Shown piece after piece: positions 55,501 to 64,000 of a stretch of DNA of 64,000 nt; the first letter of the stretch is position 1, and each line of letters begins with the position of its first letter. This DNA comes from Vitrella brassicaformis CCMP3155 (lineage: Eukaryota > Protista > Chromerida), in NCBI GenBank assembly GCA_001179505.1, contig CDMY01000562.1, positions 124,001 through 188,000 on the forward strand, in the 5' to 3' direction. Below the pieces are notes generated by a model. It worked only from the letters and a program-made list of their open reading frames with translations, searched no databases and had not been told where the DNA came from. The translations under genes were made by a program, and so were the position numbers.

Positions 55501-58500
55501 CACCCACAGCCCACACGCCATCCATCAGACGTACCATTCCCGCACACACGCACATACACACACATCCAGAGGATCGCCCACGTCACGTGCCTGTGCGTTC
55601 TTGAAGTCGGCTTCTTGTTTCTCGCTTTTCTGCAGCAACGACAGCAGGTGCCTCTCCCATTTCTGGCGGTGCTGCTGCAGCTCTGCCAGTCGAGGCCGTT
55701 CCACTTCCACCTTGACCCGGCCCTTTCGGCTCTCGTGTCGCCTCAGCCGCTCGTCGAGCTGTCGGGCCGCCTCCTCCTCGGCCACCCGCAAAGTGCTGTC
55801 GGCACAGTCCTTGCTCATCCGCGACCGATCCTCAAACAGAGCGAACAGCACGTCACGGCAATGGGCCACCTTCTCCAGCAGCCATCCCTGGTCGACGCGC
55901 AGCTCGAATACCAACATCTTGTCAGCGTCTTCGCCGTGCTCGTCTCGCAGCATGGTCCTCGGGTCGACGACTGCCTCTGCAGGCTTCTCTTCTTCCTCCT
56001 CTGCTGCTGCAGCAGGTGGCTCCTCAACTGCCTTCTTGTCCGTCTTGCCAGGACTGGCAGGTTTTGCAGGTGGGGCGGCTTTGCCCTTGAGAGCTAAGGG
56101 CGGGGGCGGGGGCGGGGGCGGGGGCGGCTCCTCTTCATTCTCCTCTTCCTGCTGCTCTTCTCTCGGCGGCGGCTCAGAAAAGGTGAAGCGCTCGGCTATG
56201 TCCGCAAGAGTCGACTCACAAACGAAGTCGAGACCGCCTGATCCACAATAGACAGTCAAGGCAGGGATAAGGCAGAGAGAGAGAGAGAGAGAGACATGAA
56301 GTCGGCTTGGGGCGAGCATGCTTTGTGGTTTGTGCGTGTCTCACTGGGTGCCTTCCATTGCGGTTTGGTTGGCTCAGGGGGCGGGGGAGGAGGAGGAGAC
56401 TCCACTGGCTTGGCTTTGTCCTTCTTGCCTTTCTTGTCAGGTGCCGGTGCTGCCTTAGGAGCTGCTGTCTCAGCGGGCGGGGCGGCGGCAGACTCCTCGT
56501 CCTGTCATCTCATCCAAAGCATCTGTTTTGTTTCCTTCTAGATGTACAAGACTGTGTCTCTTTCGGTGTGCCATGTGTGCTGCCTGCCTTCACCCCTACC
56601 TTCTTCTCCTGGTCCATCCGCCACTGCTTGAGAGTGATCATGTCAAAGACATGGCCCATCTTGCTCTGGTGGCCGTAGAATAGTGCCTCGAGCTTAGGGG
56701 TGAAGTCGGCGTGGATCTTGCAGAGGAGGGCGGCATGGTCGCGATAGGCCTGCTCGAGATCGTCCAGGGCAGCAAAGGAGGTGTCCACCAGGGCCTGCAG
56801 GCTCTCCTCGTCCGACGCCGACTTGATACTCCTGCGTGGCATGCAGAAGGAGAAAATGACGTACCCATTCGCTCATGGTCCCACAGCTGCAGTACCTGTT
56901 GATGTCGCTGAGGTGTTCCTCCCTGCTGGTGCAGTCATTCTGGTGTTCGATTTTGGTGTTTTCGATCCACCCCTGCTGGTCCTCCTCGGCGAGCCGCAAC
57001 TCGTACTTCCACACGCGGTTGCGGTCCTCCACCTGCTGCAGGAATTTGACAAGCCGAAGGCAGGTACGGTGTTGCTCCTCGTCCATCTCCTGCAAACAAG
57101 ACAAGACAAGACAAGACAATGGCTGAAAAAGGGGGAGAGAGAGAGAGAGAGAGAGAAGGATCGCACGCACCTGCACCCAGGCGGATGCACACTGCGCCAT
57201 GGTGGAGTTATTGTCGAGGTGTTTCTGGGCGTGTGGTCTGATCTTGGCGTCGACGAGGCCCTTGAGGTCTTCGAAGCCGCCCCAAGCGCTGCGGGCATCG
57301 TACTCGGCCAACTCGACGCACAACTCGTCTGCACCCACCCATCCATCCATCCATCCCTGTATGTGACATGGGTGCCACCCCGACAGCCTCAATGACTAAC
57401 CCAGGATGGTGTCGGCGAGGTGTGTGGTCTGCTGCTGCACCTGCCGGAAGCAGTCAAACAGCTTGTCATACTCCTCCTGCGTGACGTCGTTGACGCTGTT
57501 CAGCTCATCCTCGACACGTTTCAGCTGGCCGCTCTCCCACTTGTCCAGAGGCACGGCGAAGATCGAGCTGACCAGGGCCATGCGCTGCCGGTACACGCCG
57601 TCCTGTTTGGTTCGGAGGGCGTCGAATGCGTCCATAAGTGCGGGGGGCCGCCTGAGCTCGTGGCCCTGGTTGATGCGGGCCAGCGTGCGGCGAAGGGCGT
57701 AGCGGTGCCTGGAGAGACACAGACACACACACATTGGATGCGGTTTGCCTTCTGTGTGTGCGTATCTGTCTATGCGTCCTCTACCGCTGTTCCCTCCAAC
57801 GTGCTAGGGCGCTATGCCACCTCTCCTTGCCCCGCTTGAGCTTCTCAATCCCGCTCAGCTTGAGCTTGGCACTCAGCTCGGCGAAGGCCTTCTTGTTCTC
57901 CAGCACGTTCACGTTCGTCTCGATGCAGTAGTCCTCGACCAGCCGCTCCACCTCTCCCTTAGGCACGTATGCGATGCTCATGAGCTTCTCCGACAGTGCC
58001 TTGAGCAGCGCCTCGTTGGTGTCCCGTCGCTTGCCCTCGAGCGTCTCCAGCTCAGCAGCAAAAGTCTGCACCCTCTGCTGGTATTTGCTGCCCCAAGCGT
58101 CCACCTCCACCAGCACCCCATCGATGTCGTGCCGCGTCATGTGGCCGAGGGTGTCCTCGCCTTCCGAACCAAACATGGGGTCACGGGAGGGGTCCACACT
58201 CGCCTCATCCCCCTCTCCCCCATCCTCTCTCCCACCCTCGCCCCGGTCTCGTTGCTCCTGCGTCTCTTTCTCCTGTTCTGCGGCTTTATCGGCGTCTCTC
58301 TCAATGATGCTTCTCTTGGGAAGTGTGGGCGCCTGCTCCAGAGGCCGCAGGAGAGCTTCCAGGAACTCCTCCAGCTTGGTGATGTCCTTCTGCATCCCCT
58401 GTGTGGCTGACTTGATGCCTTTCTCGAGTGTCTCCTCCACAGCGAAGTTCTCATCGTCATACAGGGCGAGGCTCTGGTCGTGCCGCGCCTTGAGCCGCTC

Positions 58501-58977
58501 CATCAGCCCCTTGACTCGGCCACCCGACCCGCCCACACCGCCTTCTTGAAGTTGAGGAGCCGTCAGTGTGGCCACTTTCTGCCTCGCCAGCCGCCGTTCG
58601 GCCTCTGCTGCACGGACCCTCTCAGATGCACCGGCGGGCAGAGAAGCACGCCGCTCTCTCTTCGGGCTCGGTGGCTTCGTGGCCTTCTTTTCATCGTCGA
58701 CTTGCTCATCGTCAGAGGCCGCCTTGATCGAAGAGCGCTTGGCCCTCGCTTGTTTGACCTTTTTGTGGGCGTGGATGGCCTCTGCCAGCTTGAAGGTGTC
58801 CCGTAGGGCGGCCGCAAAGCTACTCGGCATCGTGTTTCCCGGCGCGGTGAGCTCCTTCTGCTTGGTGAGGCCCAGCAGGTCCTTGTCGAGGGTTTGGTCA
58901 TTGCATTCGGTGCGTTGGTGATCCTGGAGGTTCAGGTTGGCCCTCAGATGCGCCACTGTCGCCATGCCGCTTGCCAT
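52574..58977 (-). CDS. CCDC180: Large coiled-coil flagellar protein, CCDC180-like (DUF4455/DUF4456 type)
   Basis: LMSIAYVPKGEVERLVEDYCIETNVNVLENKKAFAEL...ERWHSALARWRE|QRHRYAL, a Pro/Glu-rich middle, and KHGGPRRRAQEQLRS in the C-terminal region. Long multi-exon helical ORFs. Confidence 0.7.
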
Positions 58978-59074: not shown

Positions 59075-60243
59075 CTAGGAGTGCTTTTGACGAAAGATAA
59101 AGTCACTTACATAGTTTGCGATGCGTCCATCGATCCATCCGTCCATCGCATACGACACACAGCACCGCCCATAAGCTCTAAACCTACCCTCGCTCCCTCC
59201 AGTCGACGAAATCACCATGGTGCACTGCAGGAACCCGGGGTTGTGGCCAACCAATCGGTCGCAAAATCCCACCAAATCATGGTACAGGCCTGCCTGCCGA
59301 CAACTAACACATACAATACATGGCTCCCTCCCTCCCTCCCTCTCTCCCCCTCTCTCTCTCTCCAAGACTCACAGAATCTCCACTTCTGGTTCATCCTCGG
59401 CCTCTCCCCCATAGCCGTCGCCCGCCCCACCCGCACCCACACCGCCCACGAAGCCCGGGAAGCCGCCGCGGGCCAGCCGCTGCTGACACGCCTGACGGAC
59501 GTCATCTGGCAGGTGTGTGATGATCTGCCGGGCCGCACGCTGGCCGCTCAGGTACGCCCCTGTCAGCAGGCCGCCGTCCCACGTCGCCTCGCCTGCACAC
59601 GAGAGGAGAGAGGAGGGAGGAGAGTGTGTGGGTGTGTCGGACTTGCAAGTCAGTGACCTGACTGACCTGCGAATACGAGGTGGCCGTCATATTCTGGGGC
59701 CGCGAGATCGGGGGCGTAGCATGTCGATGCATCCTGACCGACCCACCACACAAGGACAGACAGACAGACAGACAGACAGACAGAGGAGCACACCAAAGGC
59801 AGGTGCGACCGACGGCCTCATCGAGATGCGTGTGGATGGTAGGCCCTGTGTGTGGAGGTGAGGTGGGGTGAAGGTTGTGTAGGGTGCCCACCGGTGTGTG
59901 GTAGACCTGTCCGCCGAGTGTCTCAGGGTCGTTGTCCCAGTGCATCACTCTGGCGTCAAGCAGCGGAGGCAACACATGCAGATTCCCACCCTGTCATGAC
60001 AGACATGACACACAGACAGACAGACAAAGAAACAAACCGATGGACCAACACACCACACCACAGCCGTACAAGACCTGCCTGCGGGGGTATGGTATTTGCC
60101 TGTGAGCATTTGCCTGTCTGCCTGTCTGTCTGTCTGGCCGGCGCCCTCTCACCCACGCCGCGCGACGCACCTGTGTGTGTTTGATGTGGTGGAACATCCC
60201 CTCGAGCACTCTCAGCACCTCTGGCAGCACCTGACATGGCAGA

Positions 60244-60274
<31 letters not shown>

Positions 60275-63200
60275 GGGCAGCGAGGCCGACCACATCATCT
60301 TGTGACTATGGATGGATGGATGGATGGATCCACTGAGTGGAGCAGGGCCGGCGACCCACCTCATGATCGCTCAGGCCGGCCCACTGGTTGCACAGCGGGG
60401 GGTGCACATGCGCACACACCACACCAGTCTTCCCTGTCACACACACACACACACACACACTCGAGCAAGAAGTCCCCCCAACAAGCGCGGCCGGCCAACC
60501 ATATGCGTGCAGATTGAGGAACTGCATGGGCATGTCATGGCTCTGCTGCTGCTGCTGCTGCTGGTGCTGCTGCTGCTGGTGCTGCTGCTGCTGCTGGTGG
60601 TGGTTGGTGGACATGTGTCTGTGGGTAGCGCCCCAGTTGGGGGCATGGCCGTATCGCTCCCAGAGGGGGTGGATGCACCCGTCGGCCGGCGAGTGGATGG
60701 CGAACCGCATCACCACCCTCGTGTGGGAGCCCCAGCACATCTTGCTGATGGCATCGCGCTTCAGCCACGACAGGGCAGGGGAAAACACCGGCACACTGAA
60801 TGACACACACAGGAACACCATAACAGCCATTCTATTTGTATTTGTGTGCGTGGGGGTGCACTCTGTCTGTGCCGACCCGACGGACCGTTTGCTGAGGTGT
60901 GGCGACTGGTTGATGTGTCCCTGGTTGGGGTGGCAGCCGTGGGCGGCCTTGAGCACACCCAGAGGAAAGGTGCACACCACATAGCGAGCCCGCCACTCCT
61001 ACACACACACACACACAAATACACACACACACACACACACACATACAGACAGATCAGATCCCATCACACACATGACATGGCCACCGATTTGCCCACCGAC
61101 CTTTTTGCAGTCTCTCGAGTCGTTAGTGAGTGTGACGATGACTCCGCCCGAGCCCCGGCTGTCGTGTTCGATGCCCCTGACGGCGCTGCCATACCTCACA
61201 CACCTGGTGAGCCACCCATTGTGGCTCCGCAGCAGCGGCTCGATCGCCAGCCGACCGCACCCATTCACCAGCAGCCAGTCGCGACGCTCCTGCAGTTCCC
61301 CTGCCTCAAGCACCCGCACGTGTGTGTCTGCGGCCGCCATCTGCCTGAAGGCCTCGTGGCCCGTCTGCTGCAGCTCGAAGGCGTGGGCCTTGACGACCTC
61401 ATCGCGGCTGGACGTGAGCAGGAGGTCGCTGCTCCAGGAAGTGCCGCGCAGCATCTCGGCGAGCTGCCAGGTGCGGTGATCCTCCTGCTCAGGAGTGAGG
61501 AGGCGCCCCCATCTGAACGTGGGCTGCTCCTGCTGCTGCTGTCCTTGTGGCTGGAGGAAGTCCATTGGGTGTGGGGCCGCGACGGGTATATCCCTCATGG
61601 AGCAGAGGGAGCCGTACTTGCGGGTGATGAGACGCTCGAGGACGGGCGTGTCGCGCCCCGCGTCCCAGTACAGGCCGCTCCGGCGGATGGCCCGGTCCTT
61701 GAGATACTTGACGGCGGCCTCGAGGTCGGTCAAGCCCTGCAGGGGCTGGACGACGTCCTCCCAGCTGACGGTGGGGGGGTTCATGACCACGGTGGCAGGG
61801 GGGACGTGGGGCAGAGAGGCCATGAAGGCCTGCACCAGTTGCTCGATCTCGTCGGCGTGCTCGATCCACTTGAGCGTCTCGTGCCACCTGGTGGTGTAGC
61901 CGCCCAGAGTGTACTTCTGGGAGAGGTCGTAGAGGGCCAGCTTCTCCCAGGGGGCGGGCTCCTGCTGCATGTGGCTGCACCGGTGCCAAGGGTTGCCCTG
62001 CACCAGTGCGGCCGCCCTGAGCTCCTCGTCCAGCAGCCGGAGCACGAGGCTGCACTTGGCCACCCGATTCTGGTCAAGCGTCACCTCCTTGCCGCCCTGC
62101 CGCCGCGTGTCGAAGTACATGGCCACCTCTGCTGAGTCCGCAAAACCAGACGGCCCCGTCACCCACCCCAGCGGCTGCCTCTGCTGCACGGCCGCCGCCA
62201 GCAGGGGGTTGGGTGAGGGGTTGGTGTCGTCGGCCTGTGGGGATGGGAGGAGTGGCCCCTGGACGTACTGGGCGCCGAGGTCGACCTGGACGGGGGCGGA
62301 GAAGAATGCAGGGTCTCTGAGCTGTGCGGACCTGATGCGGCCGCCGGCCTCGCCCCGCGCCTCCAGGATGCCCACCGTGAGGCCGTGCGTCAGCAGCTCG
62401 CGCGCGGCCACCAACCCTGATAATCAACCATTCAGGAAATACAGAGGCCGAGTGTGGGTGTGTCGCTCTACCCGCCCCCACCCCCCCACCCGCCCGAGCC
62501 AGCGCACCTGCACATCCCGCCCCGATGACGATGGCATCCAGGTCGAAGTTGCCGGCTCCCGCACGCCTCTCGGCGGCCACAGCGGCTGTGCCGCCCGCAT
62601 GGCTCTCATCCGTGCGCTGTGCCCTCTCCTGCTGCTGCTTCAGGCGGCAGATGGTCCCAGCCGTGTGGAGGTGCAGCGTCTCGTCGGTGAGCCCGGCGGG
62701 GTCGAGTAATTCCGGTCGGAATGCAATCCGGGTGGCGTCACGGAGGCCGTGGATGCGCACGGCTTCGAGGTCGTGTCGCGCCTGGGCCTCCTGGATATCG
62801 GTGTAGGGGCCGTAGACGAACTCGTAGCCGTTGCAGACCAGGCGGGCGAAGTACTCGCGCCGCACATTGATGGTGATGCGCCAACCTGACAGACAGACAA
62901 GCAGCAAGACGTGACATATATGTGGTTGGTGGTGGTGGGCCGGGCCGTGCTGTGCTGTGCTGTGCCGTGATAGGTCTGCTGGCTGACCTTGTTCAGCGGG
63001 CACCTGTCGCGAGACGATCCCCTGCTCCTCCAGAAAACGACACAGCTCCTCTGGCAGACAGCAGACACCCAAAACGACAGACACCAAGACACGTCCAGCT
63101 GCCCTGCCCACACATGTCCCCCATCCCCTCGCATGCTTGCCCACCGGCAGGCCCAGGCCCAGGTCCTTGACCCATCGCCACCGCAAACTGCGGAGGGGGC

Positions 63201-63967
63201 GGCAGCAGGGGCACCTCCATCGGCGGCAAAACCGGCAGCGCTGCAGCAGCGGCAGCACCAGCCTCACCCCCACCACCTGGCGAAGGGCGGTCGCTCATCC
63301 GATCAGCGTCCCCCTCTCCCCGCCCCTCCACGTCGATGTCCATAGTGTCGTCATAGTGGGAGAGGTCGGGTGCCTTGGGGAACCCGGGGCTCTCCTGTGT
63401 GGCCTTGCTGGGTATGCGGCCCGTGTCGCGGAAGTGCCGGTAGCACGCGAAGAGGAAGTCGGCCGTCTGCTGGACCTCATCGGCAGTGCACTGCCGGGGC
63501 GTCTTGCGGGCGAGGTCCTTCTTCGGCGTCGTGTGGGTGCCGTCGGGGTGCTCGTATGCCGGCACCGAAAGCACCAGCTTGCCCCCCTTCTCCTGATACC
63601 ACACACCTGCCACACACACCACACACAGATCCATCCATCCATCCATCCACTCATCAACCAACCCGCTGAGAAAGAGCTCACGTGTGTCGCGCGGGAGGTC
63701 TCCCGGGAGCACCACCCTGCTGTCCGGAAAGCGCCAGAGCCTGAACTCCAGCCTGCCGTCGCCAAAGTCATCGGCATGGCCCTGCCGCACTCGCTCCTTC
63801 ATCTCGGCACTCCAGGCCTGGATGCCCCAGCGCACCCAGCGGGCCTCCGCATCGGCCATGGAGCTGTCTGCACCTGTGTTCTCCGCTGGCTGGCCGGGGG
63901 GGAGTTGCGGCGGCGGCGGCAGTGGCAAGTGCAGGTGCGGGGGCTGCGCAGGTGCCGATTGGGGCAT
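59075..63967 (-). CDS. Flavin-containing amine oxidase (LSD1/PAO-like) with N-terminal AP2-like domain(s); both ends uncertain
   Basis: IVIGAGCA|GLVAARELL...ILEARGEAGGRI, VDLGAQYVQG, YVVCTFPLGVLK, FSPALSWLKRDAI, WDNDP and LVFA|GEAT...LTGAYLSGQRAARQI. Upstream lies GWRITIN...YGPYTDIQEAQARHDLEAVRIHG...IAF. The 5' end may lie outside the window. Confidence 0.85.
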
Positions 63968-64000
63968 CTTGTTGTCCCACCCTTTCAACACAAGGTTTGG

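Follow-up and report, generated by a model that had tools for sequence, protein, structure and literature searches.

Does Vitrella brassicaformis encode an amine oxidase that carries its own DNA-binding domain? The question is raised by a gene at one end of the window, by which we mean the whole 64,000-nt stretch of contig CDMY01000562.1 that was analysed. The sequence-only reading of this stretch had proposed the fusion of an AP2-like DNA-binding domain with an LSD1-like amine oxidase. We find one expressed gene with multiple exons on the minus strand, which extends from 64000 or beyond to 59369 and has its 5' part outside the window. The protein has both ends of a flavin amine oxidase fold, in a very divergent version, and a small non-oxidase module lies N-terminal to it in the same transcript and frame. 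This part of the proposed fusion is borne out, while the identity of the module as an AP2 domain is not. We favour the reading in which this end-to-end oxidase is preceded by a diverged module related to the AP2 type, and give it, as a whole and with the gene structure included, a probability of about one half.

The gene structure was read with the help of public contigs placed on 59300-64000, among which those of two runs, X6 and X7, come from independent studies. The host is a eukaryote with a GC-rich genome (about 60-65%). Exon 1 is partial (63682 to at least 64000): contigs of X6 and X7 span 63679-64000 without a joint, and there is no in-frame stop up to 64000. Of the 4355 nt of the spliced X6 contig, 1483 fall beyond the window end on the 5' side. 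Since the frame is open to the last position and the transcript extends beyond it, the protein almost certainly starts outside the window. The part inside encodes at least 1150 residues, and up to about 490 more could be encoded upstream. Exon 2 (63145-63606) is followed by a 63-nt micro-exon with GT and AG borders (exon 3, 62988-63050), coding EELCRFLEEQ-GIVSRQVPAEQ, by exon 4 (62508-62885) and by exon 5 (61101-62416, 438 codons). The joints 63606/63682, 63050/63145, 62885/62988 and 62416/62508 are all seen exactly in the spliced contigs of X6 and X7. Exon 6 (60886-60998), which contains YVVCTFPLGVLKA, is joined to exon 7 in contigs of X1, X6 and X7 (60795/60886), and its joint to exon 5 (61101/60998) was deduced from record positions. 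In exon 7 (60500-60795) are found the AISKMCWGSHTRVVMRF motif and a poly-Gln/His tract; the acceptor of this exon is confirmed in the RNA contigs and its donor at 60500 is predicted from GT and frame. When checked by script, GT and AG were present at all six exon borders tested, and the spliced frame ran through 872 codons without a stop.

The end of the gene is a prediction. Exons 8 to 12 would lie at 60360-60433, 60171-60230, 59892-59990 (or to 59907), 59667-59733 and 59372-59592, all on the minus strand, with the stop codon at 59369-59371. They were placed by GT/AG borders and frame, and form the sole GT/AG combination over 59369-60433 that keeps the frame; the RNA contigs do not span these junctions. 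In these predicted exons lies the coding sequence for the C-terminal half of the oxidase, with its W-x-DP and FAGEAT...GAYLSG motifs.

What identifies the enzyme? The start of the fold that binds flavin adenine dinucleotide (FAD) is encoded at the end of exon 4 (DAIVIGAGCAG) and continues in exon 5 with the beta-alpha-beta unit (LVAARELL...EARGEAGGRI) and part of the substrate domain. The junction of the two exons reads IVIGAGCAG followed by LVAARELLTHGLTVGILEARGEAGGRI, and it shows the GxGxxG, the acidic residue and the GGR of this family. The first 53 residues of exon 5 match positions 4-49 of the Pfam profile Amino_oxidase (PF01593) with E 3.1e-8, above the Pfam cut-off, and NAD_binding_8 also matches the FAD-binding start (E 1.2e-4). 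At the other end, the 83 C-terminal residues obtained by splicing predicted exons 10 to 12, whose junctions are themselves predicted, match positions 375-443 of the 443 of the same profile (E 1.6e-8, 34.7 bits with a cut-off of 19.8), and this segment has the W-x-DP...G-x-Y and FAGEAT...G-A-x-x-SG of the C-terminal FAD site. Hence, both ends of the fold are present. Between them, motifs recognised by eye come in the order of the family: NP-x-x-x-L, G-C-G-R-L, TFPLGVLK, F-x-P-x-L...AI, W-x-DP and FAGEAT. The protein is a very divergent member of PF01593.

The extent of the divergence is apparent in the searches. The middle of the oxidase, at least 300 residues, matched no profile and no PDB chain. 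The 438 residues of exon 5 have no true relative among 1.84 billion protein cluster representatives, and a word search with them was also empty. The single match of the exhaustive search, a 2984-residue RPGRIP1-like protein (P0001; E 3e-5, 30 bits), is a repetition artefact and carries no meaning, because eight near-identical repeats inflate the summed score. Exact look-ups of two predicted contig products gave no match, and searches of single exons against PDB and NCBIfam pointed to no useful oxidase subclass. About 195 residues encoded by exon 5 (around 61400-62000, minus strand) form a proline-rich insertion, which has no Pfam match and no relative among the 1.84 billion proteins. A CAG-rich tract at 60548-60615 encodes the Gln/His run of exon 7 (HHQQQQQHQQQQHQQQQQQQ) within the oxidase domain, and the transcript contigs end there.

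The module N-terminal to the oxidase is the more difficult part. The sequence-only reading had noted a 56-residue peptide (GWRITINV...RIAF), whose minus-strand codons occupy 62719-62885 together with one base at 62988, and had placed it in one exon with GAGCAG (62508-62523 plus 62415-62416). The shared exon proved correct: exon 4 encodes the peptide, then a linker of 65 residues, and then the start of the FAD-binding fold. That reading missed a first strand-like stretch, GIVSRQVPAEQ, which sits in the micro-exon. As this stretch precedes the peptide from exon 3, the candidate module has 67 residues (GIVSRQ...RIAF, 62719-63021, minus strand) and is split by a 102-nt phase-1 intron (62886-62987). 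It would be strand-rich, with a helix-prone stretch at its end. Low-complexity linkers flank it on both sides, as expected of a separate small domain, and its strand-like stretches contain one Trp and several Arg.

Is this module an AP2 domain? For the profile tests we retrieved AP2 domains with the domain of AtERF1 as bait, which was verified to be identical to 1GCC, and built hidden Markov models (HMMs) locally; the spliced query pieces had at most 92 residues. A genome scan for bacterial AP2 domains that could broaden the HMM found none. Much of what followed weighs against an AP2 identity. Pfam AP2 (PF00847) gave no match at E up to 10, either with exon 4 or with a spliced segment of 84 residues, and PHROGs and NCBIfam gave none for the module. 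On an HMM of 83 ERF AP2 domains the module scored 0.6 bits, a value equalled or exceeded by 166 of 3000 shuffled sequences (p 0.055), while the same HMM gave 24-47 bits on phage AP2 domains taken as positive control. Comparison with the ERF alignment by hhalign returned a probability of 0.27%, with the helix region (NGYEFVYGPYTDIQEAQARHDLEAVRIHGLR) at 29% identity. Neither a word search nor a metagenome scan found a homologue of the module, whose charge is low (isoelectric point 8.2, net charge +0.9, i.e., barely basic). In the structural tests, the AlphaFold model made from the single sequence shows four strands and one helix, all short, with a pLDDT (predicted local distance difference test) of 44.9, and Foldseek found no AP2 structure with it. 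Under identical conditions a phage AP2 domain (L003) reached a pLDDT of 85-91 with the order strand-strand-strand-helix, and Foldseek matched it to 1GCC, TEM1, WRI1 and ERF96 at probability 1.00. The pipeline is thus able to detect a real AP2 domain, and it did not recognise the module. The AP2/ERF pattern that had been read from the letters did not stand out clearly from chance in these profile scores.

When eight phage AP2 domains were added to the ERF domains, the score of the module on the resulting HMM was still marginal, at 1.5 bits, and 75 of 3000 shuffles scored as high (p 0.025). Some observations point the other way. The weak HMM signal falls in the expected helix region, where QEAQARHDLEAVRIHG aligns with eeAalaydraafkmrg (empirical p 0.025). 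The clearest indication comes from the language-model features of the ESM Atlas. With residues 1-62 of exon 4 as query, AP2 was the only named family in the 30 nearest clusters, to which it contributed 15, the best at 0.90; when the AP2 clusters are set aside, the best named cluster reaches 0.80, with 118 shared features. The best AP2 match has 165 features in common with the query, fewer than the 170 usual for members of the same family, which again counts against a straightforward assignment. These features are the sole line of evidence that favours AP2 specifically, and the AP2 claim at this locus draws on this one kind of evidence; we regard it as a lead rather than a proof. The method may also have picked up the short motif that had caught the eye in the letters.

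The most serious competitor of our reading is that the resemblance to AP2 arose by chance. The module would then have another fold, as a domain specific to this lineage, or be a piece with a role in protein interaction or regulation, and the protein would be a divergent oxidase whose long N-terminal extension is an orphan. The negative or marginal profile and structure tests, obtained while the positive controls worked, fit this explanation, as does the low charge of the module. Among the 1061 six-frame pieces of the window run on the ERF HMM, ten outscored the module frame, which was not among the ten best. A phmmer search of PDB led, by adding up weak matches, to a designed Kelch repeat protein instead of an AP2 domain. 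This last point has little force: we rejected the Kelch reading because each repeat gives at most 6.5 bits and the total is inflated by six identical designed blades. The gap in the language-model features, 0.90 for AP2 and 0.80 for the next named family, speaks against a chance resemblance. We put this explanation at somewhat less than even odds. A derivation of the module from AP2 stands just under an even bet, and its membership of the family is plausible rather than demonstrated. Two further matches were tried for the module and set aside. A Pfam match to TEBP_beta (E 0.047, 13.8 bits with a cut-off of 26.6) was treated as chance, and an internal repeat of the two AP2 candidates gave a local score of 22, reached by 443 of 500 shuffles.

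The second of these candidates, more weakly proposed by the sequence-only reading, lies at about 63440-63606 in exon 2 and was said to begin with the ApiAP2-like GVWY. Splicing removes this start. The intron between exons 1 and 2 is 75 nt long, stop-free and in frame, and had been read through. The glycine of GVWY is an artefact because its codon consists of the last base of the intron AG and two exon bases; the spliced codon is CGT (Arg), and the mRNA reads ...RDT-R-VWYQEK. This candidate had no match in Pfam, PHROGs or the Atlas, nor with the AP2 HMMs. Three introns of the gene (63607-63681, 62886-62987 and 60796-60885; 75, 102 and 90 nt) have lengths divisible by three and contain no stop codon, so that a raw open reading frame (ORF) passes through them and acquires false residues such as this glycine. 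The candidate belongs to a region of about 125 residues in exons 1 and 2 (63470-63860, minus strand; ARWVRWGIQAW...FACYRHF) that has a low linker content and no match in Pfam, PHROGs or the Atlas. To judge from its composition, this region probably forms a folded N-terminal domain that contains the candidate. The rest of exon 2 encodes a linker rich in Pro, Gly and Ala.

If the module is uncertain, can the enzyme at least be placed among the demethylases of histones? The label of amine oxidase held at both ends of the domain; that of LSD1 did not gain support. Searched against PDB, the 83 C-terminal residues have as neighbours a bacterial MAO (E 0.026), KDM1B (0.05), LAAO (0.1), SMOX (0.19) and MAO-B (0.35), together with MAO-A, PAOX and a renalase-like oxidase, over an overall span of E 0.03-2, and these neighbours do not discriminate the subclass. 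LSD1 itself is absent among the 34 matches at E up to 10. A SWIRM domain, whose absence had been remarked on, was searched for in the part of the protein inside the window, about 390 residues before the GxGxxG, and neither it nor any other Pfam domain was found there at E up to 10 (exons 1, 2 and 4, and the spliced segment of exons 3 and 4). For the proline-rich insertion we see by inspection no heptad or coiled-coil character, and we take it to lie roughly where LSD1 has its Tower. The Tower is a long antiparallel coiled coil within the oxidase domain, found in KDM1A only.

The active site raises an additional question. In exon 7 (60660-60700, minus strand) the stretch WGSHTRVVMRF, aligned by eye with FGNLNKVVLCF in LSD1, has an arginine at what we take to be the site of the lysine near flavin N5, which is found in LSD1 (K661), in polyamine oxidases (K300 of the maize enzyme) and in MAO. 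Three PDB searches with this region returned no oxidase. If the alignment is right, catalysis could be altered or lost, which would weigh against our reading of a working oxidase.

These observations bear on two further explanations. In the first, a true AP2 domain is fused to a histone demethylase of the LSD1 type, an enzyme that would locate its DNA targets by itself and remove methyl groups from lysines of histones nearby. The fusion within one transcript is real, the C-terminal part has KDM1B as one of its best PDB neighbours, the insertion is by inspection at about the place of the Tower, and the Atlas features favour AP2. Yet the 390 residues before the oxidase hold no SWIRM, the insertion is rich in proline, bacterial MAO, LAAO and SMOX score about as well as KDM1B, and the lysine near the flavin appears to be an arginine. 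We find this explanation improbable. The second makes the protein a metabolic oxidase of polyamines or of other small amines, with an N-terminal extension that helps to localise or regulate the enzyme and is unrelated to chromatin. It draws on the presence of SMOX and PAOX among the neighbours, on the motif SGQRAAR, which is shared with spermine oxidase, and on the window part of the protein, in which there is no SWIRM, AT-hook or basic cluster resembling a nuclear localisation signal. The same neighbours, however, do not separate the subclasses, and 1.48 kb of the transcript lie upstream of the window. Known polyamine oxidases have about 450-550 residues and no N-terminal extension of 400-900 residues. 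This explanation seems to us rather unlikely, if less so than the preceding one.

How could such a protein work under our preferred reading, that of a divergent oxidase behind a module related to AP2? From the N terminus, it would consist of the folded region of about 125 residues, the Pro/Gly/Ala-rich linker, the 67-residue module, a second linker and the oxidase domain. The oxidase would most likely bind FAD and oxidise a C-N bond of an amine, be it a polyamine or methyl-lysine. The N-terminal modules would serve as tethering or regulatory parts, and for the 67-residue module the best reading is a relative of AP2-type modules, strongly diverged and perhaps degenerate, with putative DNA binding. 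A bolder version holds that this module, together with further modules upstream, is a true, highly diverged DNA-binding domain of the AP2 fold, and that the gene belongs to a chromerid-specific family of amine oxidases or demethylases equipped with sequence-specific DNA readers of their own. We entertain it as a tentative proposal, on the doubtful side of even.

The surroundings of the gene were also inspected. Microsatellites of the types (GT)n, (GGAT)n and (GTCT)n lie in its introns, at 61001-61057, 63618-63663, 60240-60300 and 59746-59790, and they interrupt every short-read assembly of the locus. Run X4 carries the DNA of the locus unspliced. A tblastn search of the window found no further copies. 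The neighbouring ORF of 398 residues (57784-58977, minus strand) matches Pfam DUF4455 and is present on 3.2-kb Logan contigs (ERR558149 and ERR558200), which end at a repeat before the oxidase gene.

The interest of the locus depends on what the N-terminal modules do. AP2 proteins are the main family of transcription factors in apicomplexans and chromerids. If the modules bind DNA, an amine oxidase that is perhaps a histone demethylase could recruit itself to specific sequences, and this family of transcription factors would have merged with an enzyme of the chromatin type. Even without an AP2 domain, the gene would stand as an expressed and unusually divergent amine oxidase with a large orphan extension, a large insertion and possibly a changed lysine in the active site. 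The earlier statement that no such fusion had been described agrees with our full-text search of the literature, which found no paper on an architecture combining AP2 and an amine oxidase. The chromerid genome paper describes an expansion of apiAP2 and no AP2-amine oxidase fusion (PMC4501334).

How does the protein compare with known systems? With the domains of AP2/ERF and ApiAP2 (PF00847) the module has in common a length of about 60-67 residues, a strand-rich part followed by a helix-prone one, the helix-region pattern G-x-[YF]...EA-x-A-x-x-D...A...G and language-model features that are nearest to AP2 clusters. It differs from them by an excess of 8-9 residues between strand positions two and three, by the lack of the conserved RxWLGT and YRGVR stretches and by its weakly basic character, and AlphaFold run on the single sequence does not fold it. 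With LSD1/KDM1A and KDM1B the protein shares an amine oxidase domain and a non-catalytic N-terminal region, and KDM1B is a weak neighbour of its C-terminal part. In the KDM1 proteins, however, a SWIRM precedes the oxidase, and the Tower of LSD1 is a helical hairpin, whereas the insertion found here at a comparable place is, by inspection, proline-rich and of another kind; by the PDB neighbours of its C-terminal part, the oxidase appears no nearer to KDM1 than to MAO, LAAO or SMOX. The broadest likeness is to the PF01593 family as a whole (PAO, SMOX, KDM1A/B, MAO and LAAO). The unmatched middle, the insertion of about 195 residues, the poly-Gln/His tract, the probable Arg in place of the flavin-N5 Lys and an N-terminal extension with 390 or more non-oxidase residues set the Vitrella protein apart from this family, while the N-terminal GxGxxG...E...GGR, the C-terminal FAD motifs and the order of the motifs are the same in both.

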